Below are positions 36,141 through 64,000 of a stretch of 64,000 nucleotides of DNA, in pieces. The notes under the pieces were generated by a model. It worked only from the letters and a program-made list of their open reading frames with translations, did not search any database and had not been told where the DNA came from. The number at the start of each line of letters is the position of its first letter. The stretch's first letter is position 1. The stretch lies in the IMG/VR virus record IMGVR_UViG_3300032053_000002, positions 1 through 64,000 of that record; one strand, given 5' to 3'. The translations under genes were made by a program, and so were the position numbers.

Positions 36141-36489
36141 TGGAGTCGGCGGGGAATCGAACCCCGCGTCCGAAATAGTTCCAAAATCAACATCTACAAT
36201 TATAGTTTGTTTTTATTTTATATCGCGAAAACAAACAAAACATGATAACAACTTTCTTTTAATTCTATGTTGTGAAAGAATGGAGGCCTGACCGAATGGT
36301 CATTCCGGCTACCAGTTGATATGACACCGCTTTTCCCACTATCAACGTCATGGAGCGATGGCGACTTAAATAGTTTTAAGCCGCGTAGGCAAGTGAATAG
36401 TTGCCATTTATTTTTGTTTTTGGTTTTTAACGTCACCCCGACGAATTGCAGTTAATCTTCTACCTACCCCGTCGAATCCGTGCGACCCC
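36141..36489 (-). ncRNA. ssrA: tmRNA; tag (A)GNYSLAYAA at 36405-36376
   Basis: 5' GGGGUCGCACGGAUUCGAC; 3' GCGGGGUUCGAUUCCCCGCCGACUCCA; G3.U alanine pair; 349 nt; tag ORF ends AA-stop after AUAAAU. Confidence 0.95.
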
Positions 36490-36716
36490 AATGTAGTAAC
36501 AACATCATCATGGCTCAGAAACTTTGTTGATTGAGCATCTTTAGCACCCGAATACCATCTATCTCTACTACCGAGTGCGTTTTCAAACGCGTTTAAACAC
36601 GCCATTAAATATTTCGCCAGAATAAAATCTGGAGTGTTCGAACCGTTTTCAATACTGTTTCTGTTAATTAAAGTTTCCAATTCTTTCATAAATTTTGTTT
36701 TCGCCATTGTTTTCAT
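36408..36716 (-). CDS. Conserved phage hypothetical protein overlapping tmRNA 5' end
   Basis: LINRNSIENGSNTPDFILAKYL. Confidence 0.6.
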   Translation of the reverse strand: MKTMAKTKFMKELETLINRNSIENGSNTPDFILAKYLMACLNAFENALGSRDRWYSGAKDAQSTKFLSHDDVVTTLGSHGFDGVGRRLTAIRRGDVKNQKQK

Positions 36717-36755
36717 TTCCTTTTAATAAATATACGCAAATTTTATTAATATACT

Positions 36756-37799
36756 TTATTTTAACAGTAAATGTGGTTGCGCTTCAATTTGCCCAGCGGA
36801 AGTAACTCTTACGAAATCAACTTTTGCGCGAAATTCGTCTAAAGTTCTGGCACCGACATAACTCATGGAAGACTTTAATCCGTCCGTAATAGCCTTTATT
36901 ATTCGTTCCACCTTGCCTTTATAAGCGACAATTTTGCTATTACCTTCGATGTTATCCGTGTTTTCATTTCGATCCATTTTCGCCGATTCCGATGCCGATC
37001 CCTTATATTGTTTATACAATTGCTCGTCAGGAAAGTTCCCTATTCGGATAAACTTCCCAGGGGTTTCCTTTGTTCCAGCAAGAAGTGAACCCAGCATCAC
37101 AAGGTCGGCTCCAGCTCCAATCGCTTTAGCAACATCTCCTGGTGTCCTTATACCGCCATCCGCAATAATTATATTTTTTCCCTGCGTCGCCTCGTAAACG
37201 TCCATTATGGCCGTGAGTTGCGGAATACCGATTCCAGTACGAATGCGAGTTTCGCAAAGAGAACCGTTTCCTTGCCCAACTCTCAGAATATCCACCCCCC
37301 ACTCCAGTTGGTCTGTCGCCGCTTCTTTGGTGGAAATACTACCACCGATAACGATGATGTCTTTTAACTCTTGGCGAAGAGCCTTCATTACGTCTTTCAT
37401 ATGTTTGGAATGCCCATGCGCAATATCAACTATAAAAGTTCTCGCTCCATTCAGATACAATTGTCTAACCCGTTCCAAATAATCACCTGTTGCGCCAACG
37501 GCAAATGGAGTTGCTTCAATTCCCTTATCTCCTATGTATTGTATTTTAAGAGATTGTAGTTGTTCCAATTGCTTATCAATAGGCATAAACCGATGAATAG
37601 TTCCTATTGCTCCCAGTTGATATAAAATTTCAGCCATTTTATATTCTGAAACGGTACTCATTGGCGACGATATTACCGGAACGGAAAGAATTACGTGATC
37701 AGTTACCCACTTTGTTTCTAAAGAGCATTCGCCTCTAGACTCCATATCCGAGTATTTCGGAGCTATTTGCACATCATCGTAAGTCAGACATTCTCTCAT
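36756..37799 (-). CDS. IMP dehydrogenase/GMP reductase family (no CBS domain)
   Basis: LTYDDV; SSPM.TV; DIAHGHS; VG.G.GSLC.TR; [21 protein letters not shown]; EG. Confidence 0.9.
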
Positions 37800-37811
37800 G
37801 CGCCCTTCTTT

Positions 37812-38165
37812 CTAAAATTTTTTATAATCAGGATTATTCATAATAATGTTTTTCCCGAGATCAAGATATAACGTATCTTTACCAGAAAACCTTCTAGTAG
37901 CTGGGAAAAAAATATCCCATACTTTGAGTTGATTAGTTCCGCGTTCCCAATGTCGGCAATAACACCTAATCTCATCATCGCCTTGATAAAATACTAAAAT
38001 ATATTGATAAGTTTCGCCGACCTTATATGTTTCGGCCAGTGGTTTCTTATTCGACAATATTTCAGTTTGAACGGTATTATGAATTCCATAAAATATCAAA
38101 AAAACAAATATCAATGAAATAAAAAATATCCACGGTACACCGGCGTGATTTTGTTTTTGGTTCAT
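37812..38165 (-). CDS. Membrane-anchored hypothetical protein
   Basis: N-terminal TM. Confidence 0.5.
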   Translation of the reverse strand: MNQKQNHAGVPWIFFISLIFVFLIFYGIHNTVQTEILSNKKPLAETYKVGETYQYILVFYQGDDEIRCYCRHWERGTNQLKVWDIFFPATRRFSGKDTLYLDLGKNIIMNNPDYKKF

Positions 38166-38181
38166 TACATCATTTCCTTTC

Positions 38182-38994
38182 TTATTTTATTATAAAATCT
38201 TTAGTGTTTGAAACTTGCACACCCATCGCTACCATCGACTTAATGAAATCGTCTTGAAGTTGTTCGAATCCGCTAACGGGACTCATACCATCTTCCAATA
38301 ATACAAGTTTTTCTGGTGAGATACCATCAAGTAAAAACTCGGATACAATATCCTTTACGGTATTGGCGACGCAATGCGAACCAGCTTCACCGACCACAAG
38401 AACCGAGTCGCAATCCTCCAGCGTTTCGATAAGTTTAATGTTTGTCAGGGTTGATGGGTCGTTCATGTCAGGAACGTCGGCTTTAATCGCTGAATAGTGC
38501 TCAGTGAAAGAATTACTCCCTTTGGTGATATAATTCACGTTTGTCGCATATTTTTGCTCCCACTCTTTTAACGTGTCGAATAGTGGTTGCATAACGGCCT
38601 GCCCATCACTTCCAATCAGACAGTGCGGAGGCCAGATACATAATGGGTAACGTTTGTTCTCTTCCAATGATTTTATGTAGTGCAAAGCCTGTTTGAATGT
38701 ACCTGGAATGAAGGGCAACCAGGTTGCTGCCAATACATCTTCCAATTTAATAATAGTATACGGGAGCGGGTGATTACCATTAACATCCACCCAGAAAATC
38801 GGATGTGCAATATGAACGGTTTGATGCGTATCTAGAGTTACGTGAATATAACGAAGTTTTTCGCCAATCCGTTTAATTAAGTCCGATATTCTTTCTATAT
38901 CCTTTTCTGCATTCTTCACATATAAAACGTTTTTTATCGGGTCGCAAAAATCTACTTGCGGATCGATGATAAGTAAATCAATTTTTTTATTCAT
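38182..38994 (-). CDS. pncA: Nicotinamidase (isochorismatase family)
   Basis: IIDPQVDFC; D.H; WPPHC; KG; YSA; GEAGSHCV; next to pncB. Confidence 0.85.
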   Translation of the reverse strand: MNKKIDLLIIDPQVDFCDPIKNVLYVKNAEKDIERISDLIKRIGEKLRYIHVTLDTHQTVHIAHPIFWVDVNGNHPLPYTIIKLEDVLAATWLPFIPGTFKQALHYIKSLEENKRYPLCIWPPHCLIGSDGQAVMQPLFDTLKEWEQKYATNVNYITKGSNSFTEHYSAIKADVPDMNDPSTLTNIKLIETLEDCDSVLVVGEAGSHCVANTVKDIVSEFLLDGISPEKLVLLEDGMSPVSGFEQLQDDFIKSMVAMGVQVSNTKDFIIK

Positions 38995-38997
38995 AAT

Positions 38998-40161
38998 TTA
39001 TCGTCCTTTAATTTCTTGTAATGCGCGTTTAATCATATCTTTATTTCCCGTATATTTTGTTTTCGAGTCGCTCAACTTTATCGTCGGTATCCATTTACCG
39101 TTTCCATCTGGATCCGCTGCGGTCATTTTGATTACCATATTCAGAGGTTTAACTTCAGGAATATCATTCGTAAGATAAGTGCCGATGCCGTAAGAAGTCT
39201 TGATGCGACCATTAACATATTTTTCTATTTTTTTCACAAAGTCGTAGTTTAGGCCGTCCGAAAATACTATTGTTTTGGAAAGCGGATCGATTCTCAATTT
39301 TTCATAGTGTTTGATTGCTTTATCTGCGAACTCAAACGGCGAACCCGAATCCTGTCGTACACCGTCAAACAATTTTGCGTACAGGGTATCAAATGACCGA
39401 AAGAATTCGTCGGACGTGAACGTATCAGTTAACGCGATTCCGAGATTACCGTGATACGCATCCACCCATCTACCCAATGCAACTCTTGTCGCCATTTTGA
39501 AACCGTATTTAGCGGCGTGAAACATATACCACTCGTGAGCCTGAGTTCCTATCGGAGTTAAATCATATTTGTGCGCAAGACTAACGTTGCTGGTTCCGAC
39601 AAAGTTTTTATTGGGAGAAAATGTACTAACCATCAGGTTTTGATACCAATACGCATAACGTCGGCGTGTTCCAAAGTCGGCGAATTTTATACCAAGTGCT
39701 TTAAACTTTTCGGATTTTTTATTGATAAGTTCCGTAACTTTACCGAATTCACCGGTCATATCAACATTTTTACGAACCATTGCATAATTCAATTCACTAA
39801 TCATCGCCATCAACGGAACTTCCCAGAGAATTGTGCGATACCAGTACCCCTCGATAACTACTTTTAAGTCGCCACCATTCTGAGTTATTTTGACTTCGTT
39901 CGGGTCGTATTTATACCCTTCGAGTAAATCTAAATAAACGGGGTCGAAGAAATAGCACTTATCTCTTAAAAACTCTTTTTCCGACTTTAATAGTGATGGT
40001 ATTTTCCGCAATTCATCTTTTAATTGTGCTCCCAAATACTTTGGAAATCTGTGTTTTCCGCGATTGATAAACTCATATCGAACTTTCGCGTTGGGATATA
40101 ATTTCGCGACAGCTAGTTGCATCGAGAATTTATACAAATCAGAATCGAGAATTGAAATCAT
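38998..40161 (-). CDS. pncB: Nicotinate phosphoribosyltransferase
   Basis: SILDSDLYKFSM; DFGTRRR; GTSNV; GTQAHEW; LTDT; GVRQDSG; VFSDGL; GIGT.LTND; KLSD. Confidence 0.95.
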   Translation of the reverse strand: MISILDSDLYKFSMQLAVAKLYPNAKVRYEFINRGKHRFPKYLGAQLKDELRKIPSLLKSEKEFLRDKCYFFDPVYLDLLEGYKYDPNEVKITQNGGDLKVVIEGYWYRTILWEVPLMAMISELNYAMVRKNVDMTGEFGKVTELINKKSEKFKALGIKFADFGTRRRYAYWYQNLMVSTFSPNKNFVGTSNVSLAHKYDLTPIGTQAHEWYMFHAAKYGFKMATRVALGRWVDAYHGNLGIALTDTFTSDEFFRSFDTLYAKLFDGVRQDSGSPFEFADKAIKHYEKLRIDPLSKTIVFSDGLNYDFVKKIEKYVNGRIKTSYGIGTYLTNDIPEVKPLNMVIKMTAADPDGNGKWIPTIKLSDSKTKYTGNKDMIKRALQEIKGR

Positions 40162-40177
40162 AACTTATCCTATTTAA

Positions 40178-40411
40178 TTAAAATAAAATTTTCATAAAAA
40201 CCGTGACCAAAATAAACCATATAGCAAATGAAAACATCATACCGCATGCCATTAGAAATAATATACTATCCCATTGTTTGCTGGTATGCGCAGAAAAATT
40301 TGTATCCAGTTTTTTATCGATTTCATCACTTTGTTTTTGCCAAAATATAGCCAATCCTGCTCCAGAAAGTATAACAACCAAAACCCAAAGTAATCCTTTA
40401 AGAAAAATCAT
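40178..40411 (-). CDS. Small two-TM membrane protein
   Basis: Hydrophobic segments, GGAG RBS. Confidence 0.5.
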   Translation of the reverse strand: MIFLKGLLWVLVVILSGAGLAIFWQKQSDEIDKKLDTNFSAHTSKQWDSILFLMACGMMFSFAIWFILVTVFMKILF

Positions 40412-40619
40412 AACTTCTCCTATTTTTATTCATAATTCTTTAATATATAATCTATTTCATTTAAAAGTTTTTTCATTTTTCTTTTATATTGGTTTATTTC
40501 ATTTTTGGTGTCTTCTCTACGTATCATTGAACGTAATGTATTAGCATACTTTAAAGCATCAAACGCACAACTATATAAATAATCGTATGCGATTTTTTCA
40601 TTAAGATTTACTGGTAAAC

Positions 40620-41561
40620 TCATTCTATTTCTTCCTTTATCAATTTTCTTCTTGAAATATTATACGGATTATTTCTTTTAAATTCCGATTTTAAATGTCG
40701 CCGAATAACTGAGTGGTCTTCATCTACCTCGCGACCGTGAGTATAATCACTTAAAATTTCATCAACTTCTTCGTATGTCTTTGCTCCCAATTGTTCCAGA
40801 TCAGAGTTTGTTATTCCTAACCCATCAGTCGGAACGGCATCTATACATAACCGCATGGCTTCCGCTTTTTTAAAATCCTGGTTGCATCCAGACGAGTAAT
40901 CATTTAAAAGGTATTTTGATAATGTATACACTTCGGTTTTCCAGAGATTCTGTATCATACCAAAGTCACCCACGTCGCCGTGAAGTGTCCAGAATCCGAG
41001 TAAATACTCGGTATAATTGTCAGTACCCAAAACCATTCCTTTATTAGTATACGCAAGATTATACAGGTAAATCATTCGCAGTCGTGCTTTGATATTTCCC
41101 CTACGTATTTTTTCTTCCATCTCATTCGCCATCAGAACATATTTTTCAGTAACATCCATTTCCACATTAAAAAAAGTAGCGAGCAAATCTGTATTTTCCC
41201 TAAAATCAGTACAAAACGCTTCGCCGGTAGCAATCGCCCTTTTTTGTTCTTCGTCCGTGTTCGTTTCAATCGGCAAACTGCGACCAATCAACGGAATACC
41301 TAAATGTCTGCAAACCGGTTCGGCTATTGCACAACATAACGCACTGTCTATACCGCCAGATACACCGATGATCAGTGATTTTATTTTGTTGGTTACGATA
41401 TAAACATCGAGCATATCCTGAATAGTTTTAATAACCGACGCGGCTTCTTTTTCTGTTATAAATGTCGCCTCTTTTGCTAATACTTTTTCGGTGGCGTCCA
41501 TCACTTCTTTCAATGTTATTCCGATAGTCATTACTTCTCCAATGCTTTTAAAGTTTAACAA
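40620..41561 (-). CDS. nadE: NH3-dependent NAD+ synthetase
   Basis: GVSGGIDSA; GNIKARLRM..LY; GTDN.TE..LGFWTLHGD; KTEVY; PTDGL; no glutaminase domain. Confidence 0.92.
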   Translation of the reverse strand: MLNFKSIGEVMTIGITLKEVMDATEKVLAKEATFITEKEAASVIKTIQDMLDVYIVTNKIKSLIIGVSGGIDSALCCAIAEPVCRHLGIPLIGRSLPIETNTDEEQKRAIATGEAFCTDFRENTDLLATFFNVEMDVTEKYVLMANEMEEKIRRGNIKARLRMIYLYNLAYTNKGMVLGTDNYTEYLLGFWTLHGDVGDFGMIQNLWKTEVYTLSKYLLNDYSSGCNQDFKKAEAMRLCIDAVPTDGLGITNSDLEQLGAKTYEEVDEILSDYTHGREVDEDHSVIRRHLKSEFKRNNPYNISRRKLIKEEIE

Positions 41562-41850
41562 TACTATACATGGCAGCTAAGGTTTTCCATTTATCTATTA
41601 TACGATTTTTTTGAATACAAATTTTCTTGTATTTACTATCAAGTTCTTTTTTTGTAGGAACTTTAATGTATTTATATCCATAAGTAACATAGTTGTCTGA
41701 ATGCTTCCATGCACCGAATTCAGAACACCATTTTTCGAGATGATATTTTATATCTTCTTCAGTAAAATCTTTTGAAATGCGAAATATTCTTTTTTCCTCC
41801 GTTCCACGATTTGATTTAATCCAAAACAAAACATACGTTTTATTTTTCAT
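41548..41850 (-). CDS. Hypothetical protein
   Basis: Coupled ORF in early operon. Confidence 0.5.
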   Translation of the reverse strand: MKNKTYVLFWIKSNRGTEEKRIFRISKDFTEEDIKYHLEKWCSEFGAWKHSDNYVTYGYKYIKVPTKKELDSKYKKICIQKNRIIDKWKTLAAMYSIVKL

Positions 41851-43654: not shown

Positions 43655-44668
43655 TCAGTTATAAAGTAATATCTCTTTTGCCAGTTTTGCGTCATAACTT
43701 GGGGATTCATCATACCCATCCGATTTGTCAAGTTTAACATATTCATTTTCTTTTCTTTCGGTCTTCTTTCTTCTACCCGCCGTATAAATAACCTCAAATC
43801 TTTTCAAGTTTAACGATCCTTTATACTTTTCAAAAAACCCATCATCTTCATCTCTATTACATAAAAACACTTTTGAATTTTTTAACCGTTTGCAAAACGC
43901 GACCACTTCTATTTGTTTGTCATCATCAAAATCTTGCCCATATTTAGTAAATCCTCCTCTATATGGCGGATCTAAAAAGAAAAACGTATTGTTATCCTCG
44001 ACTCTATTTACACAATCTCTCCAATCTTCGGAATAAATCTCAACGTTTTCTTGTAGAATTTCCGACCACATCATAACATTATTTTTATCATAAATATTTA
44101 CTACTTGATTTAGTAATCCAGACGGAGTACCAAATCTACCATTGGTATTTTGATTCACTTGCCAAATACCATTAAACCCCGTCTTCATTAAAAAATATAA
44201 ATGGGCGGCTTCTATGCTCGGCGTTTCTCTCCATTTTTCATAATCAAACGCGTGTTCGTAACGAATCTCAAAATATAATTTTTTTCTTTCTTCTTTATTC
44301 AATCGAATATATTCGCCTTCTAGTCTGTCCATCTCGTGAATAAAAGTATTAACATCATTTTTTATCGAGTTATATATACGAATAATACCATCATTAATAT
44401 CATTGATTACTATTCTTTTTAAGTTGGGATTCTTTACTAAAACTCTTAATAGCATAGCTCCACCACCAAAAAATGGCTCACAATAATTTTCAAATTCTAA
44501 ATTTGCCATTAGTGGAATATAGTGTTTTAACATTTTATTCTTACCGCCGGCCCATATGAAAAGTGGTCTTATTTTTCGTTGTTTGTCTTTATTTTTTATT
44601 ATCGGATATTCTTCTTCCAAAATAAAATAATCTTTGTTAGCCATACCTAAAAACCTCTCGTTTAACAT
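43655..44668 (-). CDS. D12-class N6-adenine DNA methyltransferase (Dam-like)
   Basis: WAGGK; EPFFGGGA; INDIN; FNG; FLDPPY; probable start 44644. Confidence 0.92.
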   Translation of the reverse strand: MLNERFLGMANKDYFILEEEYPIIKNKDKQRKIRPLFIWAGGKNKMLKHYIPLMANLEFENYCEPFFGGGAMLLRVLVKNPNLKRIVINDINDGIIRIYNSIKNDVNTFIHEMDRLEGEYIRLNKEERKKLYFEIRYEHAFDYEKWRETPSIEAAHLYFLMKTGFNGIWQVNQNTNGRFGTPSGLLNQVVNIYDKNNVMMWSEILQENVEIYSEDWRDCVNRVEDNNTFFFLDPPYRGGFTKYGQDFDDDKQIEVVAFCKRLKNSKVFLCNRDEDDGFFEKYKGSLNLKRFEVIYTAGRRKKTERKENEYVKLDKSDGYDESPSYDAKLAKEILLYN

Positions 44669-46351: not shown

Positions 46352-46969
46352 TTAAACGATTTCCCATCCCTGTTCCAGATAGGCTTCTGCCTTTTTGTAT
46401 TTGATTTGTTCTATAACCTGATCTGTAACATTATTCTTTATATTCACTTTCTCGTTCCGACCATATTTGAACGGATTTTTAATCGTCTTGAAAAAGTCTA
46501 TCATAAGTTTACCATCCAGATGTGCTATCTCATGCTGCACGCATATACACTCTAACAACCCGCTATCGTTCATAGAAAATTCGTTTTCGCCAGTGATTGG
46601 ACAAAATATCATCTTACTCAGCCAGTTATCGGCTTCAACCGTGATTAAAGTATGTCTTATTGTTCTCGCCGTTTTTCCGGGGAAACTCAAACAACCTTCT
46701 GAATATACAATCTCGCCTTCGGCTTCAATGATGCGCGGATTGACCAGATAAAACGGCTTGTCCTTAACTTTTATGGCGACAACTCGTTTCAGAATACCAA
46801 TCTGCGGTGCAGACAGTCCAATACCGTCTTCGTGCTCAGACAATACCTGTAACAACTTTTCGCCGATTTCTCGCCCCTCTTCTGGAGTGGCCGGTTCGCT
46901 GATTTGCCTTAAAAACTTTTCGTCTTTAATTATTTGCATTTGCCTTCTCGATTGTTTTCCAGTACGCAT
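46352..46969 (-). CDS. def: Peptide deformylase
   Basis: GIGLSAPQIG; EGCLS; QHEIAHLDG. Confidence 0.95.
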   Translation of the reverse strand: MRTGKQSRRQMQIIKDEKFLRQISEPATPEEGREIGEKLLQVLSEHEDGIGLSAPQIGILKRVVAIKVKDKPFYLVNPRIIEAEGEIVYSEGCLSFPGKTARTIRHTLITVEADNWLSKMIFCPITGENEFSMNDSGLLECICVQHEIAHLDGKLMIDFFKTIKNPFKYGRNEKVNIKNNVTDQVIEQIKYKKAEAYLEQGWEIV

Positions 46970-47163: not shown

Positions 47164-47463
47164 TTATCCCCACCATTTTATTTCTTTTAATGGAATATCC
47201 CCAACGCTCCCATGATGAAACACCTTTTCCAGAAGATATTGCGGAATCGCGATATACAATAACATCAACGCAAGCATGATTAGTGTAGCAAGTATAACAA
47301 CCGGAAAGATCACGAACTTCATTTCCAGTGATTGCCCCCAGTTCGCTAACATAAAATCCGCCCAATGAAAAACTCTATCTAAAAGCGGAAACGATTTAAC
47401 GAAAAGATAAAGTTGAAAATAAAAAACTAAAAAACGTATAAAGTATCCGATTGCTTTTATCAT
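47164..47463 (-). CDS. Small membrane protein
   Basis: Hydrophobic segments; ATGA coupling. Confidence 0.5.
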   Translation of the reverse strand: MIKAIGYFIRFLVFYFQLYLFVKSFPLLDRVFHWADFMLANWGQSLEMKFVIFPVVILATLIMLALMLLYIAIPQYLLEKVFHHGSVGDIPLKEIKWWG

Positions 47464-48086
47464 ATGATTTCGTCCACCATTTTATATTTCAAGCAGGTTT
47501 CTGCATCGAAGAACAGATCATGCAACAGGATTTCATCCAGTTTATCGGCAGGTATTTCAGTATACTCCGCATACACTTGTTTGATAAGTGTCATAAAGCG
47601 TTCCAGATTCTGCATCTCATCTTTATGCTCGGAGAACTTGCCCCAAAAAACAGATTGTAACTCATGAATGAGCATGAAAGAGTGACGCGAAATCTGACGT
47701 TTCTTACCGACTACCGACAAGAATGTCGCCGCGGATGCACACACACCATCCACGATGGTAATCACGGGCGACTGACATTTCAATATGTTGTCCATTGCGG
47801 AAAATCCAGAAAAAATACTCCCGCCATAACTATTGATATGCAAAAATATTGGATCTAAAGTTTCACGACCATGAATTTGCTTATCACTTATGTTCGTGTT
47901 ATCGATCTCTTTCAATTCCTTATTCAATTTGAGAACCTCTGCGCGGTCTATATCGGAGTAGAAAAAAATTCGGTTGTTGACAACTTCAAGAATATCCGGC
48001 TCTTTGATGAAAATTTCATCTTTCGGTGGCTGAACAGGTTGATCATTTTTTCCGTTTCGTATATCCCATGCACACATATCACACAC
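47460..48086 (-). CDS. clpP: ClpP-like protease subunit
   Basis: LHINSYGGS; GVCASAA; MLIH; DLFFDAE...YKMVDEII. Confidence 0.88.
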   Translation of the reverse strand: MCDMCAWDIRNGKNDQPVQPPKDEIFIKEPDILEVVNNRIFFYSDIDRAEVLKLNKELKEIDNTNISDKQIHGRETLDPIFLHINSYGGSIFSGFSAMDNILKCQSPVITIVDGVCASAATFLSVVGKKRQISRHSFMLIHELQSVFWGKFSEHKDEMQNLERFMTLIKQVYAEYTEIPADKLDEILLHDLFFDAETCLKYKMVDEII

Positions 48087-51322: not shown

Positions 51323-51649
51323 CTATTCTTTCGGTTTAATAGATTTTAAAACACGGTCAATATCGTCGCTCACTTCTTTTTTAAGTCGTTTCAGAGTTTT
51401 ATTTACAATTTTGACATACATTAAATAAAAGATGTTGGAAAAAAACAAAATGAATATAAATATAAAAATCACGACAAGTGATGGCGAAAAAAATGCAAAA
51501 TACAAAAATAATAATAAAGAAATAAGTATTGATAAAACTTCATTGATATTAAAAATAATATCCAGACGTTTCTCCCATTTTTCTATTAGGTTGTTATTCA
51601 ACCGTATTTTGTCGTTTAATAAATTCATATTTTTTAATATCTTCTTCAA
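51323..51649 (-). CDS. Membrane protein
   Basis: Two TM segments. Confidence 0.45.
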   Translation of the reverse strand: MKKILKNMNLLNDKIRLNNNLIEKWEKRLDIIFNINEVLSILISLLLFLYFAFFSPSLVVIFIFIFILFFSNIFYLMYVKIVNKTLKRLKKEVSDDIDRVLKSIKPKE

Positions 51650-52406
51650 ACCACACTTTTAATTCATAACCACGTCGCTTCACGGCATCCCATTTCAGTT
51701 TATCATTTTCTCTTTCATAACCTTTTGTCTCGATATAATAAAAATTTTCATCGTTATCAAGAACTTTAAAATCTAAAAGATAAAAATGCTCTTTTCCATC
51801 AACTCCAATATATTTTATTCGATCATTTGTATATTCCCAATCTTTTATATCTCCGTCCCGTTTCCACCTATCAAGTATTTTACAAGTTCTTAGTTCATAC
51901 GTTCCTTGTACTTTTATTTTTCCATGCGTTGTTTCTACTTCCACCCATCTAGTTATTCCGCCAAAAACCGGTTTTCCATTTTCATACGATTTTTTTACCG
52001 CAAGAGATAAATTTTTTCTCGTTTCATTGCTCACAAAATGTCCCATTAAGGCTTCGCGTATTTTTACTAATGTTTCTTCAGAATAAACATTCGTTCTTCC
52101 CCTATTCCACGGAACTTGCCCTCTATGATTATCACTTATTTTTTTTAATCTTTCGTCCGTTTCTTTAGTCAGTCCTTTATTCCACGGAATTCTACCTTTA
52201 TTCCACGAAATTCTACCCTTATTTCTTTCCATTAATGTATTACTAACTTTTTCGTTTATTTCTTGCCGCATCTCTTTCGTTGAATAACCTCGAGCGCATT
52301 TTTTTGAGCAAAATGTTCCATCCGAATATTTACTATACTTTACAACTTCATTTATATTACAATATTTACATTTCATTTTATTTGTAATTTCCCACTTATT
52401 TTGCAC
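51594..52406 (-). CDS. Putative homing endonuclease (NUMOD-type repeats + TnsA-like PD-(D/E)XK)
   Basis: CKYC..FCSKKC; WNKG repeats; YE...Y.LDF...YIETKG; probable start 52376. Confidence 0.75.
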   Translation of the reverse strand: MQNKWEITNKMKCKYCNINEVVKYSKYSDGTFCSKKCARGYSTKEMRQEINEKVSNTLMERNKGRISWNKGRIPWNKGLTKETDERLKKISDNHRGQVPWNRGRTNVYSEETLVKIREALMGHFVSNETRKNLSLAVKKSYENGKPVFGGITRWVEVETTHGKIKVQGTYELRTCKILDRWKRDGDIKDWEYTNDRIKYIGVDGKEHFYLLDFKVLDNDENFYYIETKGYERENDKLKWDAVKRRGYELKVWFEEDIKKYEFIKRQNTVE

Positions 52407-52452
52407 TCTCGGCAGGATTTGAACCCGCCCTATTCCGTTGCTCTACGAGAGC
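52404..52452 (-). ncRNA. 49-nt tRNA minihelix-like RNA (acceptor stem + T-arm only)
   Basis: GCUCUCG-UAGAGCAACGGAAUAGG-GCGGG-UUCAAAU-CCUGC-CGAGAGU-G-CAA. Confidence 0.6.
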
Positions 52453-52814: not shown

Positions 52815-52895
52815 TATCCACGGCAGGATTTGAACCTGCGTTTTCAGCTCCGTACTACGGCTAATGCGTTCGTAGCGCATCCCGGCTACGTGGAC
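52815..52895 (-). tRNA. Non-canonical D-armless tRNA-like RNA, anticodon ACG (Arg), long variable arm
   Basis: GUCCACG/CGUGGAU acceptor; 8-nt UAGCCGGG linker; AUGCG-CUACGAA-CGCAU; 24-nt variable region; GCAGG-UUCAAAU-CCUGC; ends A-CUA. Confidence 0.75.
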
Positions 52896-54395: not shown

Positions 54396-54869
54396 TTATT
54401 TCTTTAATATTTTAGTCGCCAGTTCTACCAGCTTTTCATTAAACCCATCCAACATATTCGTATGTAAAACATTATCAGGAAAAAACGGCCAAATATCGTC
54501 AACATCGTCGTCTAATATCAGAAATGATTTCACGTTTTCCTTATTGTTTTCCAACCATTGTGATATTTCTTTCCCGCGAATATCTTCCCGAGTCTTTGGA
54601 GTGAGCCCAATAACTTCCCAATTAACATTCTTTTTTTCAAATAGTTGTTGAAAATAGTCAATCGTCTTCCCGTATCGCCAACTTGAAGATATTACGATTT
54701 TGGAATCAGTCAAAGAGATAAGTTTATTTAACGCGATAATACAATCATCGTCCAGAGATTGTAAATCCCTTTCATCACTGGATAACTTTTTATCCCGTAA
54801 ATTTTCAATGCTCTTTCTAGTAACGAGAACCCCGTCTAGATCAAGAAAAATAATGTTAAACTTTTCCAT
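54396..54869 (-). CDS. HAD phosphatase (Swiss-army-knife RNA-repair type)
   Basis: IFLDLDGVL; KIVISSSWR; RGKEI..WL; ILDD. Confidence 0.85.
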   Translation of the reverse strand: MEKFNIIFLDLDGVLVTRKSIENLRDKKLSSDERDLQSLDDDCIIALNKLISLTDSKIVISSSWRYGKTIDYFQQLFEKKNVNWEVIGLTPKTREDIRGKEISQWLENNKENVKSFLILDDDVDDIWPFFPDNVLHTNMLDGFNEKLVELATKILKK

Positions 54870-54930: not shown

Positions 54931-56919
54931 TCACGAGCGACGACTCTTATTTTTTAACCACTGAAATACCCTGTCCACGTTGATTGATTTTTCAAAAATT
55001 TCTTCTTTATGCCCGATTACAGAATAAACATATTCGTCAATTGTATTTTCGCCCAAAAGATAATAGATATTTACAGGATTTTGTTGACCTATCCTATGCA
55101 ACCTATCTTCCGCTTGTGACAATAACGCCGGTGTCCACGGTAATTCAACAAACGCAATCTTATCGCAAATTCTCTGTAATCCATCGATACCTATTCCGGC
55201 CGATTGCAGCGAACCGATGAAAATCTTTATATCTTTTTCAGCTATGAATCGGTTTATAGTGTCGCTAACTTCATTCGCCATCCCGCCATACAACATCACC
55301 GAACAATTTCTGTATTTATTAAAAAGATTTTCTATTATGTCGCGATGATGAGCGAAAATAACCAACTTATCAACTTGCTCCAAAGTATCGTCAACCCATT
55401 CGAATATCGCGTCCATTTTGTACGTCGCCGTGGCCTGTCGTAAGTATTCTATTTTAACCATTTTTTCTGCGTATTCACTGCGAGTTGTTAGTTTTTCTTC
55501 AATCAACTCTTCTACTTCAATTTCAGATAGATTTTGTTTCTTTAACTTTTCTTCATACCAGTTTATAGAGTCATCTTCTACTTCTTTATATTTTTTGTAA
55601 TCAGATAAAGGCAAATAAACTACCTGTTTTATCTTGTCTGGTAATTCCTTTAACACGTCTTTTTTCATTCGCCGAATCATACAGGATTTTCTTAGTTCGG
55701 TCTGCAACTCTTCTTCATTCGCGGAAGTGTATATCGTTCCGAAACCATTAAATTGCGGCGGTGCATATCTGCGAATAAATCGTCTTTTCCCACCGAAGTG
55801 AGAATCCAAAACACCCAACAATTCCAACTGCGGCGCCAATTCTATTGTTCTATTCAGGATAGGCGTTCCCGTTGTTAAAATGCGATATGAAACATTTTCA
55901 AAATATTTTAATATTGCTATTGTGCGCTGGGAGTTAGATGTTTTCAAATAATGCGACTCATCTGCTATCAAACACTTCGGTTTTCTTATCATAAGTCTGT
56001 CGCCAACTTTGGAAATCATATTGTAACTAACCACGTAAATATCAGAGTTCGGAAAAACGCTGCTGTTGTCTATCTTTGATGCCGTCCGATGTGGAATCCA
56101 ACTTTCTATTTCTCTCAACCAATTTCTCACAATCATGGCCGGAACAACAATTACTGCGGGGTATAATTGGTGATATTCAATAATCGCCAATGCTTGAATT
56201 GTTTTTCCGAGACCCATTTCATCCGCGATTAAAATTCCGTTCCGATGTTTAGAATATTCGACGGCGACTTTCTGAAACGGATATAATCTCTCAAACATTC
56301 CTTTGAATTCATCTGATTCGTTTATAGATTCCATAGTTGACAGTATAAATAATTTTTTTTGTTGACCTACCTCTATTTTAGCTTTATTTATCGCCTTCTC
56401 CATTTTCTTTTCGTCTATGTTATAACCGATCTCTTTAATTAGCGGATTGTTCAGCAGTTCTTCGAAAATGTTTTCATCACGTATTACAGTAAACCATAGC
56501 GGATCAGAATTCTGGCGATATTCGAATTGTAAGTCCAAATCTTCTTTGAAAAATTTAATTAACGGCTCGAACTTGTTTCGCGGAAGCCATGGTAAACGAA
56601 TCTCTAATACGTTGTTATCGCCCATAATTTTTATTTCTATCGCCTGAAAAACCGGTCGACTTTCGCCTCCGCTTTTTTCTTTTTGGTATTCTTCCAACGA
56701 ATAATATTTTATTCCCAGACTTCTGAAATAATCATTGTACTTTATCAAAGAATCGTTTAGTAATTTTATTATTTCGTAATCCTTTATTTTTCCGCGAAGT
56801 AAATGACTAAACAACATCAAATCCGGAGGAGAAATACCTGTTATTTTTCCTTTAGCGGCATAATCCAGGAGCAACTTTACGAATTTTACGATGTAGTGAT
56901 TCTCAAAATTATTTGCCAA
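54931..56919 (-). CDS. SNF2/HARP-like helicase
   Basis: LYPFQ; ADEMGLGKT; DESH; TGTP; RR.K; QAEDRLHRIGQ. Confidence 0.92.
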   Translation of the reverse strand: MANNFENHYIVKFVKLLLDYAAKGKITGISPPDLMLFSHLLRGKIKDYEIIKLLNDSLIKYNDYFRSLGIKYYSLEEYQKEKSGGESRPVFQAIEIKIMGDNNVLEIRLPWLPRNKFEPLIKFFKEDLDLQFEYRQNSDPLWFTVIRDENIFEELLNNPLIKEIGYNIDEKKMEKAINKAKIEVGQQKKLFILSTMESINESDEFKGMFERLYPFQKVAVEYSKHRNGILIADEMGLGKTIQALAIIEYHQLYPAVIVVPAMIVRNWLREIESWIPHRTASKIDNSSVFPNSDIYVVSYNMISKVGDRLMIRKPKCLIADESHYLKTSNSQRTIAILKYFENVSYRILTTGTPILNRTIELAPQLELLGVLDSHFGGKRRFIRRYAPPQFNGFGTIYTSANEEELQTELRKSCMIRRMKKDVLKELPDKIKQVVYLPLSDYKKYKEVEDDSINWYEEKLKKQNLSEIEVEELIEEKLTTRSEYAEKMVKIEYLRQATATYKMDAIFEWVDDTLEQVDKLVIFAHHRDIIENLFNKYRNCSVMLYGGMANEVSDTINRFIAEKDIKIFIGSLQSAGIGIDGLQRICDKIAFVELPWTPALLSQAEDRLHRIGQQNPVNIYYLLGENTIDEYVYSVIGHKEEIFEKSINVDRVFQWLKNKSRRS

Positions 56920-57340
56920 ATGCTTGCTCCAGTATAGGAAGATGCCTATAAAACATTTTTTTCTCGGCTTCTTCTTTGCTCAAAAACCCCGCCCAATCAA
57001 CCTCTTCTTTTTGCAACAAATCACTCACAACAACCGGATATACAAATTCCGCGATTCGCGGATTAGTTATTTCAACTATGAAACAGAAAACTTTTTTATA
57101 CACCTTTCCTTTTTTATCGGTATATTCTATAATAATTGGAACATCGGACTTTATCATACCCCTTGAAAATCGCACACCGATTTCTTCTTCCGTTTCGCGA
57201 ATAGCGGCATCTATCACATCTTCACCGTTCTCTATTTCGCCTTTAGGAATCGAGTACGTCCCATTCCAGGATGCATTAGTCGGGTGGCATAACAAAATCT
57301 TATTATCGTAAATTATCGCGAGCCCGGCAGATTTTTTCAT
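56909..57340 (-). CDS. NUDIX hydrolase
   Basis: PKGEIENGEDVIDAAIRETEEEIG. Confidence 0.92.
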   Translation of the reverse strand: MKKSAGLAIIYDNKILLCHPTNASWNGTYSIPKGEIENGEDVIDAAIRETEEEIGVRFSRGMIKSDVPIIIEYTDKKGKVYKKVFCFIVEITNPRIAEFVYPVVVSDLLQKEEVDWAGFLSKEEAEKKMFYRHLPILEQAFGK

Positions 57341-58107
57341 TCCACTAACTCTCCGTCTTTTTTATAGATTATATTTTTTAGATAGTCGCGATTGTCGGCG
57401 AAAAACGGAACGTCATTATCAAGTACCCACTTTGACCTGAGAACTTTTTGCCCATCTTCGGTAACAATCTCATACATATATTTTTTTACGGTGAATCCCC
57501 ACTTCTGAGCACTGGGTAATTCTTCCCACTTTTCACCTTTACCTTTTAATTCACACATTTCTCTTAACTCGTCAGAATTTTTATTCAGTAATACTTTTTG
57601 ACTAAACATAGAATGCGCAAGAGATTGGATAGAATTTCTCTTTGCGTCAAATTGTCGCCAGATGAAAATGTTTTCCACTTCGTTTAGCGGAACATTAAAT
57701 ACCCGACAATCAAAGTATGCCAGTGAGTTGGGAAGCGCAATCACACTGTTGAAATTGGCAGTAAAAATAGATGCGATTACAGAAGAAACCTTTTGAATAT
57801 TTCCGCCAAACCACACCTGAGACTTTTCTCCACCCCAGACTCCACCACCCATTAAAAATGTCGCTTCATCTGATTGACTATATGCCATAGCGACAGACCC
57901 AATTTCTTTACAAGTTTCAACCGCCGCGATTCCCATTGCAGTAGACAACGCCCAATCAAACGGCCGTTTGAACTCATTTTTTCCAACCCAGGTATGAAAC
58001 GCTTTACCATCCACTCGAACAAAAATCGGAAGGTTCACGTCTAAATAGATTCTACTTTTTTCTTCGTACGCTTTTAGACGGTTTCCCATCTCGTCTTTTT
58101 TCTTCAT
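57337..58107 (-). CDS. tRNA-His guanylyltransferase Thg1-like 3'-5' polymerase
   Basis: RVDGKAFH; YSQSDE; FDCR; WRQ.DA.RNS. Confidence 0.92.
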   Translation of the reverse strand: MKKKDEMGNRLKAYEEKSRIYLDVNLPIFVRVDGKAFHTWVGKNEFKRPFDWALSTAMGIAAVETCKEIGSVAMAYSQSDEATFLMGGGVWGGEKSQVWFGGNIQKVSSVIASIFTANFNSVIALPNSLAYFDCRVFNVPLNEVENIFIWRQFDAKRNSIQSLAHSMFSQKVLLNKNSDELREMCELKGKGEKWEELPSAQKWGFTVKKYMYEIVTEDGQKVLRSKWVLDNDVPFFADNRDYLKNIIYKKDGELVE

Positions 58108-58496: not shown

Positions 58497-58526
58497 TTCT
58501 TAATTCCTTATAATAACACATAATTA

Positions 58527-58555
58527 AATATACGAAAATAAAGTACATAAGTCAA
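58527..58555 (-). promoter_or_regulatory. sigma70-type early promoter
   Basis: TTGACT-N17-TATATT. Confidence 0.8.
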
Positions 58556-58581
58556 CCGTTATTTTTAACACAAAAGGCGAC

Positions 58582-59187: not shown

Positions 59188-59226
59188 TTTTTATCAACTT
59201 ATCAAAGTTTTATTGTATTATATATG

Positions 59227-59254
59227 AAAATGGGTGATTAAAAATCACCCATTT
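59227..59254 (-). terminator. Intrinsic terminator
   Basis: aaatgggtgatt-ttt-aatcacccattt. Confidence 0.75.
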
Positions 59255-59329
59255 AATGTAACTCGGAGGCATATAACGTAACCTATCTATCTATAATTAT
59301 ACAATTTTATTAAAAATAAGTTCCATTTT

Positions 59330-60136: not shown

Positions 60137-60255
60137 AGTAAATCTCCTTATTATAGTTTGTTTGACTAAAACGTCCACCTTTTGATTCACGACTATTTTA
60201 TAAATCGCTCCAAAGTCTTGACGGCTCTCAACCGATGAACTGACATTTATATATG

Positions 60256-60283
60256 TTATACTTTTTAGTGTATAAAAAGTTCC
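60256..60283 (-). promoter_or_regulatory. ECF-sigma-type promoter
   Basis: GGAACTT-N15-GTATAA. Confidence 0.75.
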
Positions 60284-60301
60284 AATAGTAAATAGTAAAA
60301 A

Positions 60302-61213: not shown

Positions 61214-61515
61214 TATAATAGCAATTTTTCTTCATTAAAGTCATCAAAAACTATATTTCCTGCGCTGAATTGCATCTTCCCATTCTTAAAGTATTTTATC
61301 CAATTATTATCAATGGTTTCGCCTTCAGCATACAAAATAAAAAGGTTCGCTGAATATTTTTTAGATAATTCTCGTAAATCTTTCTCGTGAGTTTCCCACA
61401 GTGATGGATTACCCTTTAATGCATATCTGGCTTCACTATTATTTTCTAATAGGTAGTCCATTATTTTCTGATCGAACGGTTCAATCTCCACTAAAAAAAC
61501 GCAATATTTTCCCAT
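61213..61515 (-). CDS. Hypothetical protein
   Basis: Coupled ORF. Confidence 0.5.
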   Translation of the reverse strand: MGKYCVFLVEIEPFDQKIMDYLLENNSEARYALKGNPSLWETHEKDLRELSKKYSANLFILYAEGETIDNNWIKYFKNGKMQFSAGNIVFDDFNEEKLLL

Positions 61516-61517
61516 AC

Positions 61518-63062
61518 TTATATTTCTCGACTTATTATAACACTGCCTCCCGGGGAGAACATCGTTGTTTCTATCTGCCCCGCCCGTTTCTCTTTAACCT
61601 CTTTAACCGCATTATCAAAATATTCTTTAATTTCATCAGATGTTATCGGGTGTTTGGATTTTGCGTCATCTGTAATTTCTTCTATTTTATCTGGAATAGG
61701 AATTTCGCCTTCGTGCTCTTCGTCAGGCTCAGGTATTTTATCATCCTCGACCGGTATTGTCTCAATTGGTTCTGGTATAACATCATTATCGATTTCTTCT
61801 TTATCGGGTTCAGGTAAAATGTCGTCTTCTTCTGTCTTATCTGGCTCCGGAATATCCGGTTCCAAAACTACTTCTTCTATTATTTCAGGTTCAATAACCA
61901 ATTGTGTCGACTTCGGATCAACTTCTTCGGCTACCACTGGGGAAGTAAACACCTGAGCGTCTTCCTTGTTCTGAGTTTCCATTTCTTCTTGATTAATGTT
62001 AATAGGTTGAATTATTTTTTCAGCTTCTTCGATAATAATGGGATTTTGTTCTGTCGCGGCAGCAGGAAGATTGAAATCATCCGGCGGTGATTGTAATAAA
62101 TCGGTTTCTTCTTTTACTACTATTGTTTTTTTTCTCCGCCTTTTTGGTTTTGTGAGTTCTTCCACTCGTTCAGTTTCATCACCACTTATAACCGTACTCA
62201 CGCTAACTACTCTTTGTTTTCCTTCAATACTAATTCTTTCTTCCTTTGATTTTTGTATAACCATATTCATGGCGATAATAAGAGCGATCGCCAAAGGATC
62301 GAATACAAAAATAATAATAAGAGTAAACCATTTAACGACCGTGTCCATACCAATATTAAACAATCTCGCAATATACAATAACGGCCCAACATCGGCTCCA
62401 GTATCAATCAACTCAAGTTTTTTGTCTGAGATTTCATTGCCTATTCTTGAAAGTTTTGCGTTCGTAGAATCCAAGTTGGCGACATACTTAGAAATGTTAT
62501 TATCTATTCTCGTTAGTTCTTCATCGTATCGCTTGTAGACCTGACTATTTCTCCAGGAGCGGTTTTTGATTGAAACGGAATCGATTGCTATATTATTGGC
62601 TGCGATTTCGCCATTTCTATTCTGAATCGTTGATTGCCGTTCATTTCTTAACGTTGATATATCGTTTATCAATCTTTCACGCTCCGCTACCAGATCACCT
62701 TTTCGCTGATCTAGAACCTGGTTCTGAGAATTGATTTTTTCCAATCCAATAGTAGAACCTTGATAAGAACTGGTTAAATATCCGAAAATACCGGCGGAAG
62801 TAAGTATCATTAAAATCAACAATCCGATAGTCAAATATACCTTTAACGACTTCGGAACGGCTTTCCAATAACGATATAAAAATGAGGCGGTGATAATTTT
62901 AGCGAATTCCAATCCACCCATCATTATGGCGACATAAACAAGAGAACCGGCGTATAACATCGAAACACCAGTAATAGAAAATACTGCTGCCATAGAAGCC
63001 AATAGCATTGCCGAGAAGCCTAATAGAAATGTAAAAAGCCGGCTATTCGTTTTTTCTAGCAT
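61518..63062 (-). CDS. Multi-TM coiled-coil membrane protein with acidic PEPD-repeat tail
   Basis: TMs; TSAGIFGYL; VGPL.YIA; IIFVFDPLA. Confidence 0.65.
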   Translation of the reverse strand: MLEKTNSRLFTFLLGFSAMLLASMAAVFSITGVSMLYAGSLVYVAIMMGGLEFAKIITASFLYRYWKAVPKSLKVYLTIGLLILMILTSAGIFGYLTSSYQGSTIGLEKINSQNQVLDQRKGDLVAERERLINDISTLRNERQSTIQNRNGEIAANNIAIDSVSIKNRSWRNSQVYKRYDEELTRIDNNISKYVANLDSTNAKLSRIGNEISDKKLELIDTGADVGPLLYIARLFNIGMDTVVKWFTLIIIFVFDPLAIALIIAMNMVIQKSKEERISIEGKQRVVSVSTVISGDETERVEELTKPKRRRKKTIVVKEETDLLQSPPDDFNLPAAATEQNPIIIEEAEKIIQPININQEEMETQNKEDAQVFTSPVVAEEVDPKSTQLVIEPEIIEEVVLEPDIPEPDKTEEDDILPEPDKEEIDNDVIPEPIETIPVEDDKIPEPDEEHEGEIPIPDKIEEITDDAKSKHPITSDEIKEYFDNAVKEVKEKRAGQIETTMFSPGGSVIISREI

Positions 63063-63067
63063 TTTGT

Positions 63068-63253
63068 TTATAATCGGTTATCAGTTTCGCGGACAATCAG
63101 GGATTGAATTTGACCTAATTTTGCTTGCAAATATTTTAACGTATCATAAACCTTTTCTTCGGTAATGGTTTTCTTTTCCATTCCAGTTTTAGCCATATCA
63201 AGTTGAGCTGACGCTTCCCCTAAATACTGATCCACTAATTCTTTGTATATCAT
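63068..63253 (-). CDS. Small hypothetical late protein
   Basis: AAGGAG RBS and late motif upstream. Confidence 0.5.
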   Translation of the reverse strand: MIYKELVDQYLGEASAQLDMAKTGMEKKTITEEKVYDTLKYLQAKLGQIQSLIVRETDNRL

Positions 63254-63294
63254 AAAAACTCCTTAAAATTTTGTTTACTCATATAAATATAAAA

Positions 63295-63324
63295 AAAAGA
63301 AAAAGGGGGACAATTTGTCCCCCC
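63295..63324 (-). terminator. Intrinsic terminator after Ro60
   Basis: gggggacaa-a-ttgtccccc followed by U-tract. Confidence 0.8.
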
Positions 63325-63330
63325 GTTGAT

Positions 63331-64000
63331 TTAGAATTTATCACTAATGAAATCGGACATTATTGTTGGAACGTTTGTATCGAAGCCAACTACATCGAGT
63401 GCGGAAGTATCCATCGGATCCGCTATCGTAAATTCGGTGCTCGTCATTCCGACAACAATAAGTTTCACGTCATGCCCAACTTGGTCTCTGTATTGTTTCA
63501 TTGCTTGAGTTGGATGAATTTTACCTGCCCAAGTTTCGCAATCCGTATAAATAACAATCGCGTCAAAATCCTTTTTGTTATTTTTCGCCCAAATTGCTGG
63601 CAATGCGCAATCAGTTGCTCCAAACGGTAATCCGTTAGTATAATCCGTTATTTCGTTCAAAGACATTCCTGAGTGAACCTTTAACTCGGCGACGTTTGAT
63701 TGCCCAGATAACCAATCTCCTCCAGTGAATCCGATAATAGCGTGATTCTTTTCAGTTCTCATCGTTACCAATGCGAGAGCCGCAGACGCTTCTCTCGGAG
63801 AAAGGTTTAGAATGTTAGCAACACCACCATTAGACATTGAACCGGATACGTCAAGAGCTAACAATATTCTTTTCCCGGTCGGTTCAACATATTTGAACGC
63901 TAAATAAAACGCATCGTTCAGCGCTTTAACAATTTGCGGAACAACATTCCATTGACCAGACCCGCGCATACCGTGACCAGATTCGTAAGTTTTCAGCGCC
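63331..64000 (-). CDS. Ro60/Rsr TROVE-vWA RNA-binding protein (C-terminal part; runs off window)
   Basis: KRILLALDVSGSM; TDCALP; YTDCETWAG.IHP.QA..QYR; KLIVVGMTS..FTIADP.D...LDVVGFD. Confidence 0.92.
   Translation of the reverse strand, partial: ALKTYESGHGMRGSGQWNVVPQIVKALNDAFYLAFKYVEPTGKRILLALDVSGSMSNGGVANILNLSPREASAALALVTMRTEKNHAIIGFTGGDWLSGQSNVAELKVHSGMSLNEITDYTNGLPFGATDCALPAIWAKNNKKDFDAIVIYTDCETWAGKIHPTQAMKQYRDQVGHDVKLIVVGMTSTEFTIADPMDTSALDVVGFDTNVPTIMSDFISDKF

Follow-up and report, generated by a model that had tools for sequence, protein, structure and literature searches.

Jumbo phages carry a repertoire of RNA-repair genes that has been interpreted as protecting the translation apparatus against attack. 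Its members are tRNAs, RtcB or ATP-grasp ligases, kinases and phosphoesterases, a CCA-adding enzyme, a sporadic Thg1, ROT/TROVE proteins with a tRNA-like partner, PTH2, ClpP, Nudix proteins and nicotinamide adenine dinucleotide (NAD) salvage (Iyer et al. 2021, Viruses 13:63, PMC7824862). Transfer-messenger RNA (tmRNA), SmpB and peptide deformylase (PDF) have been reported in huge phages (Al-Shayeb et al. 2020, PMC7162821), and Y RNAs adjoin Ro60 in bacteria and mycobacteriophages (Chen et al. 2014, RNA 20:1715, PMC4201824). Here we describe a region of this kind in the IMG/VR record IMGVR_UViG_3300032053_000002, the genome of an uncultured T4-like jumbo phage from sediment, of which bases 1-64,000 form the stretch analysed (the window). 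Between 36 and 64 kb the window carries a tmRNA and genes for a PDF, a ClpP-like peptidase, a HAD_SAK_2 phosphatase, a Thg1-like protein (TLP) and Ro60. This is the first part of an accessory arm of ~75 kb (about 36-113 kb) rich in RNA and translation functions, and we lean, by a modest degree, towards the reading that the arm keeps phage translation and RNA integrity going through separate modules rather than as one machine.

The phage resembles the published jumbo-phage complement (PMC7824862) in combining, within one large genome, a tRNA array, an Rnl1-type ligase with a kinase/phosphoesterase, Thg1, Ro60 with an RNA partner, ClpP, Nudix and NAD salvage. Unlike that complement, it is without RtcB, a CCA-adding enzyme and SmpB, and it possesses a conserved TLP-Nudix-SNF2-HAD block, an array of two to four Y RNAs, and a family of rearranged tRNA-Arg genes. 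For jumbo phages the idea of such a toolkit has appeared in print before; what is new here is the Y-RNA array and the family of rearranged tRNA-Arg genes. A limited literature check yielded no earlier description of either the tRNA-Arg family or the TLP-Nudix-SNF2-HAD block, nor of Y-RNA arrays in T4-like environmental phages or a linkage of Ro60 with Rnl1 and a phosphoesterase.

The initial annotation, made from the window alone, had placed tmRNA, PDF, ClpP-like, HAD, Thg1-like and Ro60 genes within 28 kb and proposed that they form an integrated counter-defence. All six genes are real: the named protein genes all exceed the Pfam curated cut-offs, and the tmRNA exceeds the Rfam gathering score. 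The order of the arm genes is shared with two relatives, G025 and G014, at protein identities of 36-67%. From its start the arm of G025 reads tmRNA, guanosine monophosphate (GMP) reductase, PDF (43%), two rearranged tRNA-Arg genes, HAD (36%), SNF2 (62%), Nudix (56%), TLP (46%), a membrane protein (67%) and Ro60 (64%), followed by Y RNAs, tRNA-Met, a tRNA array, an HD-domain kinase (HD-Pnk; 54%), an HD protein (55%), Rnl1 (62%) and a metallophosphoesterase (49%). G014 keeps PDF, HAD, SNF2, Nudix, TLP, Ro60, one Y RNA and tRNA-Met in the same order; the tmRNA was not seen there. Across the two relatives PDF is 43-45% and SNF2 60-62% identical, and in both the HAD gene adjoins SNF2, Nudix and TLP. 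Co-occurrence in related phages, as far as it had been supposed, thus holds within this lineage and in fixed order; beyond the lineage the genes do not occur as a set.

The source record is linear, 292,723 bp in length with 35% G+C, and 91% complete by CheckV; almost all genes lie on the minus strand. The major capsid protein is gp23-like and shares 53-58% identity with its counterparts in Flavobacterium phage 'immuto', Microcystis phage Mel-JY01 and LR756508, the last an uncultured phage of 484 kb. The phage probably infects a member of the Bacteroidota. Phage DNA was seen in five or six sediment metagenome runs, and no near-identical DNA was found among GenBank phages. The relative G025 (162 kb) comes from the same sample as G001 (168 kb), and the two abut at the homologue of gene 14977-16215, from which we surmise that they are probably two parts of one ~330-kb phage genome split in IMG/VR.

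Ro60 extends beyond the window, which holds the part encoding its C-terminal vWA domain. The complete protein of 562 residues contains TROVE and vWA domains and matches the NCBIfam Rsr model over residues 1-559 with 526 bits, the equivalog cut-off being 900. Directly upstream lies a 1.3-kb stretch free of open reading frames (ORFs), which holds RNAs closed by a long stem. These are Y-RNA genes, two to four in number, at genome 66.0-67.4 kb. The 5' strand of the long stem reads GGGUCG and then GUUAYC, the 3' strand UUAUCC, with a U tract after the stem; the 5' motif is presumably similar to that of metazoan Y RNAs. In the whole genome a descriptor of the long stem matched four times, the mean for shuffled genomes being 0.67; the matches represent three 5' sites, all on the minus strand at 66.3-67.4 kb. 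Two of the real matches, Y1 and Y2, fold as Y RNAs. The third site marks where a longer copy (~67115-67370) begins, a copy recognised only through its homologue in G025. A descriptor hit at 65719-65812 was rejected as a Y RNA because it gave no fold (z +2) and lies within coding sequence.

Homologues of Y1 are syntenic in the two relatives, and among the three phages compensatory changes occur in 5 of the 18 long-stem pairs. The arrangement recurs at greater distance. Four other phage Ro60 loci carry one to four Y-like RNAs immediately upstream of Ro60; the descriptor hits in these loci number 11 in 172 kb, ten of them just upstream, as against 5 in 847 kb of control DNA. At the DNA level a search of five relatives with the Y-RNA region gave no match, and an exact 16-mer of Y1 retrieved from IMG/VR only the relative already known. 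The locus is like the Ro60 (Rsr)-YrlA/Y RNA systems of bacteria and mycobacteriophages in its TROVE and vWA domains and in its adjacent RNA genes closed by pairing of the 5' and 3' ends. Unlike bacterial Rsr/YrlA, its Y RNAs miss the Rfam YrlA model, and RtcB is not among its neighbours; more distant phages have an Rnl1-type ligase with a metallophosphoesterase beside Ro60 instead.

A fourth candidate, at genome 66005-66125, has the permuted order of T arm, hairpin and D arm found in YrlA. Its YrlA score is 22.3 bits, against a gathering score of 69, and junctions of adjacent tRNAs score equally; no counterpart was found in G025 or G014, and the YrlA model gave no match around Ro60 in contig G012. 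Short ORFs called at 66.0-67.4 kb, among them genome 66787-66975, are spurious, and their protein likeness to the relatives is explained by the conserved Y1 RNA. The stretch of Y RNAs upstream of Ro60 also contains a large structured RNA like the Rfam manA motif (genome 66432-66769, minus strand; L001:3432-3769), with 34.3 bits against a gathering score of 55.2 and an E value of 6e-7. A recognisably similar sequence, compared by eye, stands beside Ro60 in two relatives, L132 (~5463-5830) and G025 (~44020-44340). Directly downstream of Ro60 is a conserved gene for a membrane protein, for which no Pfam or PHROG match was found. It has more than 1700 homologues, a Pfam domain being present in none of the 120 listed, and its conserved N-terminal half is hydrophobic; as a widespread membrane protein it was rejected as an RNA partner factor of Ro60.

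The second conserved module is the HAD-SNF2-Nudix-TLP block, in which the Nudix ORF starts before the TLP ORF has ended and runs into the beginning of the SNF2 ORF. Compared with the TLP of Bacillus thuringiensis (4KGK), the phage protein aligns from end to end at 7.9e-40; human THG1 (3OTB) gives 2.5e-07, and eukaryotic Thg1 proteins in general about 1e-7. The carboxylate motifs DGKAFH and SDE of the phage protein align with those of 4KGK, and by similarity it is a bacterial-type TLP. The B. thuringiensis enzyme is a template-dependent 3'-5' polymerase that repairs 5'-truncated tRNA. The phage protein is like it in full-length similarity and retention of the catalytic carboxylates, and differs in being a phage-encoded, predicted TLP whose ORF overlaps a Nudix gene. 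The Nudix hydrolase has only weak, sub-threshold NCBIfam matches, the RppH type among them. The HAD_SAK_2 phosphatase stands alone, and its DxD (DLDG) and DDD motifs are intact.

The initial annotation had counted three non-canonical tRNA-like RNAs in the window. Two were found in 36-64 kb using Rfam, relaxed ARAGORN and a scan for a T arm with an acceptor stem; a relaxed ARAGORN call at 59223-59302 was rejected as a tRNA, being a terminator hairpin. The longer of the two, 52815-52895, has an acceptor stem ending in G1-U72, a T arm, and a 7-nt anticodon loop with U33. It has no D arm between acceptor and anticodon arm, the latter following after a short linker. Three paralogues lie on the minus strand of the genome (77422-77502, 83000-83079 and 113018-113097), and six further members were found in other phage contigs (L165:4151-4230, L177:10185-10265, L183:3231-3310, L201:2681-2760, and G025 30701-30780 and 30925-31004). 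The common layout is a 7-bp acceptor stem, a 4-bp enclosing helix and a 5-6-bp stem with a 7-nt loop YU-NNN-AN; 3' of this anticodon arm come a near-invariant D-loop-like segment with GG, a short linker and an ordinary T arm. The 4-bp helix (UAGC/GCUG, or UAAC/GUUG in one copy) encloses the anticodon arm together with the D-loop-like segment, the anticodon arm thereby lying within the D-arm region, and is paired in all eight sequences aligned, with one compensatory change. In this alignment 97% of the cells are paired, a share that falls to 33-46% once the partners are shifted by 1-3 columns, and compensatory changes occur in 15 of the 25 pairs of the structure.

The loop triplets of the four genome copies are ACG, UCU, UCG and CCU, and all ten distinct members found have Arg anticodons. 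No canonical tRNA-Arg was found in the genome by ARAGORN or Rfam, and the phage genes use all six Arg codons. We therefore read these RNAs as rearranged tRNA-Arg genes. In most of them G1 faces U72. With default settings ARAGORN overlooks family members or labels them wrongly. A 16-nt family signature searched against bacterial and archaeal genomes was in tRNA context in none of the 120 matches listed. For bacteria, a 2024 paper holds that no natural non-cloverleaf tRNA is known (PMC11551756).

The shorter element, 52402-52452, lacks the whole anticodon domain. Its acceptor stem, GCUCUCG/CGAGAGU, is identical to that of the full-length rearranged tRNA-Arg(UCG) found at the syntenic position in the closest relative (G025/L183), and the element adjoins a homing-endonuclease-like ORF. 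On the simplest reading, it is probably what an internal deletion left of a rearranged tRNA-Arg. A second homing-endonuclease-like ORF occurs at genome 83904-84608 (minus strand), at the edge of the tRNA array; each of the two edges tRNA or tRNA-like genes, and both match one place in L129 (NUMOD3 region). Two further non-canonical genes lie on the minus strand. One, at genome 79919-79995, is a tRNA with no D arm, a GAU (Ile) loop and an extra hairpin before the T arm, and GAU is also missing from the canonical set; the other, at genome 140107-140201, is a tRNA-like gene of 95 nt.

Besides six non-canonical tRNAs, the genome encodes 45 canonical ones, which lie beyond the window between 66 and 132 kb, mostly at 66-113 kb. 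A tRNA at genome 74629-74702 (minus strand), also present in G014 and G025, has a CUA anticodon of the amber-suppressor type, and a tRNA-like gene at 81704-81779 (minus strand) has a four-base anticodon according to ARAGORN; the ORFs appear intact under table 11, so that no recoding is assumed. At 96-99 kb, 32 kb beyond the window, lies a cassette of the heal-and-seal type composed of HD-Pnk, HD and Rnl1. HD-Pnk end-healing enzymes are known in Bacteroidota. The cassette is like T4 Pnkp/Rnl1 in placing an Rnl1-family ligase beside a 5'-kinase/phosphoesterase, and unlike T4 Pnkp the healing enzyme has an HD domain instead of a DxD phosphatase. The initial annotation had pointed beyond 64 kb for Y RNA, an RtcB or Rnl-type ligase, a CCA-adding enzyme and SmpB: the Y RNAs and an Rnl1 are indeed there, and RtcB, an Rnl2-type ligase, a CCA-adding enzyme (PolyA_pol) and SmpB are absent from the whole 292.7-kb genome.

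The tmRNA at the start of the arm carries a tRNA-like domain and a tag reading frame. Unlike tmRNA-SmpB systems, the phage encodes no SmpB alongside it, and the tmRNA would therefore depend on host SmpB. The catalytic motifs of the PDF (GIGLSAPQ, EGCLS and HEIAH) are all intact, as is the Ser-His-Asp triad of the ClpP-like peptidase, which aligns to ClpP 6HWM. The coordinates of all features are collected in Table 1.

Table 1. Features of the accessory arm and related genes elsewhere in the genome; window and genome share one numbering
Feature	Position	Strand	Basis and remarks
tmRNA, one-piece	36138-36489	-	Rfam RF00023, 140.9 bits (gathering score 47); ARAGORN tag GNYSLAYAA
NAD salvage trio	38182-41561	-	Nicotinamidase-like 38182-38994, NAPRTase 38998-40161, NAD synthase 40620-41561; Pfam and NCBIfam
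Peptide deformylase	46352-46969	-	Pfam PF01327, E 8e-27
ClpP-like serine peptidase	47460-48086	-	Pfam, E 3.5e-23
Homing-endonuclease-like ORF	51594-52376	-	NUMOD3 repeats (Pfam) and C-terminal endonuclease domain (PHROG); likely start ATG at 52376
Mini tRNA-like element	52402-52452	-	Acceptor stem and T arm only
Rearranged tRNA-Arg(ACG)	52815-52895	-	Rfam tRNA, 37.4 bits; missed by default ARAGORN
HAD_SAK_2 phosphatase	54396-54869	-	Pfam PF18143, E 1.5e-25
SNF2-family helicase	54931-56919	-	Between HAD and Nudix genes; Pfam SNF2-rel_dom, E 1.2e-36
Nudix hydrolase	56909-57340	-	Pfam NUDIX, E 1.2e-12
Thg1-like protein, 3'-5' polymerase	57337-58107	-	Pfam Thg1 PF04446, E 2.8e-25
Membrane protein, 514 aa	61518-63062	-	Transmembrane helices and coiled coil; conserved
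Ro60/Rsr, 562 aa	63331-65019 (in window 63331-64000)	-	Pfam vWA_Ro60, E 7e-60
Y2 RNA	66297-66370	-	Long-stem descriptor and fold
Y1 RNA	66863-66976	-	Long-stem descriptor and fold
HD and P-loop kinase (HD-Pnk)	96108-97115		
HD_5 protein	97406-98005		
Rnl1-type (ATP-grasp) RNA ligase	98018-99193		
Metallophosphoesterase	105919-106659		
Second ClpP paralogue	196439-196951		
gp21-type head protease	256459-256893		

From the identities of these genes and RNAs, their intact motifs, the covariation of the RNAs and the synteny in two relatives we infer the following biochemical steps, substrates and counter-defence purpose. The tmRNA would act with host SmpB, and the PDF would form a second translation-support module. 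The likeliest job of the TLP-Nudix-SNF2(-HAD) block would be to rebuild or trim damaged tRNA 5' ends, in which the Nudix or HAD enzyme might prepare the 5' end, and the TLP might then fill in the 3'-5' direction against the 3' strand. Ro60 and its Y RNAs, by analogy with bacterial Rsr and Y RNA, may steer damaged structured RNA into quality control or decay, and the HD-kinase/HD/Rnl1 cassette could carry out healing and sealing of the T4 type. A further module is the set of at least 50 tRNA genes, among which the four rearranged tRNA-Arg could supply the single amino acid that the canonical set lacks. Jointly the modules might sustain phage translation during host shutdown or while tRNAs are under attack by nucleases of host or defence origin.

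Several observations weigh against this reading. In a run search the phage DNA was found in sediment DNA runs only and in no RNA run. The acceptor stem is intact in each of the 45 canonical tRNAs, and G-1 is encoded opposite C73 in both tRNA-His genes; the TLP is thus not required by the genome for routine maturation, and the phage tRNAs were rejected as needing 5' editing by it, the G1-U72 ends of the rearranged tRNAs being perhaps the only exception. The ClpP-like peptidase scores 50-65 bits with the NCBIfam ClpP equivalog models, whose cut-offs are 228-361, and judged by these scores it is not a clear cellular-type ClpP. Its top NCBIfam match is a ClpP-related head maturation protease (95 bits, cut-off 120); a role as head protease is unlikely because a gp21-type protease is present elsewhere in the genome. 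In cells, tmRNA tags are handed to Clp proteases; the link between tmRNA and ClpP that the initial annotation had drawn, which carries this general picture over to the phage, is not supported. Unrelated genes stand between the named ones: GMP reductase, NAD salvage, Dam methylase, TerC, the SNF2 helicase, the homing-endonuclease-like ORF and the membrane protein. The synteny among relatives may come from common descent alone, and in phages beyond the close lineage only sub-modules recur, never the whole set. Ro60 occurs in 365 phage records, mostly actinophages, TLP in 164, mainly Bacillus, Prevotella and Caulobacter phages, and HAD_SAK_2 in 312, mainly Vibrio and Klebsiella T4-like phages, so that the three distributions are largely separate. 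Fifteen records with a similar capsid protein, among which Thg1 was found in one and TROVE in another, are uninformative on co-occurrence, being mostly fragments, of which the closest (G001) ends where the arm begins.

Such observations would fit a different explanation, in which the clustering is a matter of genome architecture: genes that are neither structural nor replicative would collect in the arm as independent auxiliary genes with routine roles, PDF and tmRNA in bulk translation, the TLP in maturation of phage tRNAs (for instance the G1-U72 tRNA-Arg), and Ro60 with its Y RNA in routine RNA quality control. We regard this as possible, if rather unlikely. It agrees with the interleaved unrelated genes, with the differing distributions of Ro60, TLP and HAD, and with the placement of ClpP and NAD-salvage genes elsewhere in relatives (a ClpP homologue on G001, and NAPRTase and NAD synthase at another place in G025). 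The TLP is also repeatedly embedded in tRNA arrays: of 8 IMG/VR TLP loci, 5 have tRNAs no more than 10 kb away, and of 9 loci examined, 2 have a tmRNA at a distance of 3 kb or less, both being counts without a matched control. PDF and tmRNA, furthermore, are common in huge phages without a link to defence (PMC7162821). Yet Ro60 recurs beside Rnl1 and a phosphoesterase in several distant phages; an Rnl1 homologue lies 1.3-2.5 kb downstream in 5 of 13 distant Ro60 loci, and a metallophosphoesterase is near in 4 of the 13. Single TLP loci in other phages have a tmRNA, Rnl1, a metallophosphoesterase or HAD nearby, or else ClpP or PDF, and the complete heal-and-seal cassette in the arm points to damage repair beyond maturation. 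The five loci with Rnl1 after Ro60 are L137, L138, L139, L144 and L146 (IMG/VR contigs of 48-548 kb), three of which also have the metallophosphoesterase; the descriptor found no Y-like RNA at any of the five. In L142 Ro60 has a metallophosphoesterase and no Rnl1-type ligase.

The same genes could instead serve host take-over, with Ro60 and Y RNA turning host PNPase on host RNAs, the ClpP-like enzyme degrading host proteins and the tmRNA sensing or manipulating stalled host ribosomes. Precedents exist: patchily distributed peptidases such as ClpP have been proposed to be aimed at the host (Iyer et al., PMC7824862), phages use tmRNAs to sense host state (Al-Shayeb et al., PMC7162821), and in Deinococcus a Y RNA tethers Rsr to PNPase (PMC4201824). 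The sequence gives nothing that separates host from phage substrates, however, and Rnl1, HD-Pnk and TLP rebuild RNA rather than destroy it, which leaves this explanation improbable.

The proposal of the initial annotation that the tRNA-like RNAs of the window are Y-RNA-like partners or decoys for Ro60 or the TLP draws on the tRNA mimicry of bacterial Y RNAs (PMC4201824), on the distance of 5-11 kb between the two elements and TLP and Ro60, and on the G1-U72 end of 52815-52895 as a possible TLP target, but is very improbable given the 7-nt ACG loop of that RNA, the Arg anticodons throughout its family in a genome with no other tRNA-Arg, the resemblance of 52402-52452 to a decayed copy, and the better candidate partners with a covarying, Ro-type long stem that adjoin Ro60 itself. 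The first element and its family would thus be structurally rearranged tRNA-Arg rather than partners of Ro60 or the TLP, and Y1 and Y2 would be the better candidates for Ro60. The preferred reading of separate modules accordingly retains real genes, co-inherited within the lineage in an RNA-rich arm, and gives up the partnership with tRNA mimics.

Among the other genes of the arm, the NAD salvage trio may be linked to NAD-depleting defences. An adjacent pair of paralogues at genome 93911-95072 (minus strand) gives DUF3293 and weak S-adenosylmethionine-lyase-like matches. Outside the arm, three paralogous short ORFs on the plus strand of the window (1056-1400, 2493-2735 and 4164-4460) have one common matching locus in relatives.

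Taken as a whole, the toolkit is a further instance of the catalogued jumbo-phage repertoire, and its value is mainly that of an example. Its parts say more. Ro60 with Y-RNA arrays here, and with Rnl1 neighbours elsewhere, ties phage Ro60 to RNA repair more closely than hitherto and supplies defined RNAs, and the conserved TLP-Nudix-SNF2-HAD block offers a concrete candidate pathway for the repair of 5' ends. It is conceivable, if doubtful, that the lineage runs a self-contained system of tRNA maintenance in which the rearranged tRNA-Arg decode the six Arg codons, TLP, Nudix and HAD mature or repair their 5' ends, and Ro60 with its Y RNAs clears the failures. Should the rearranged tRNA-Arg family indeed take part in decoding, it would represent a natural non-cloverleaf tRNA that works with the bacterial ribosome.

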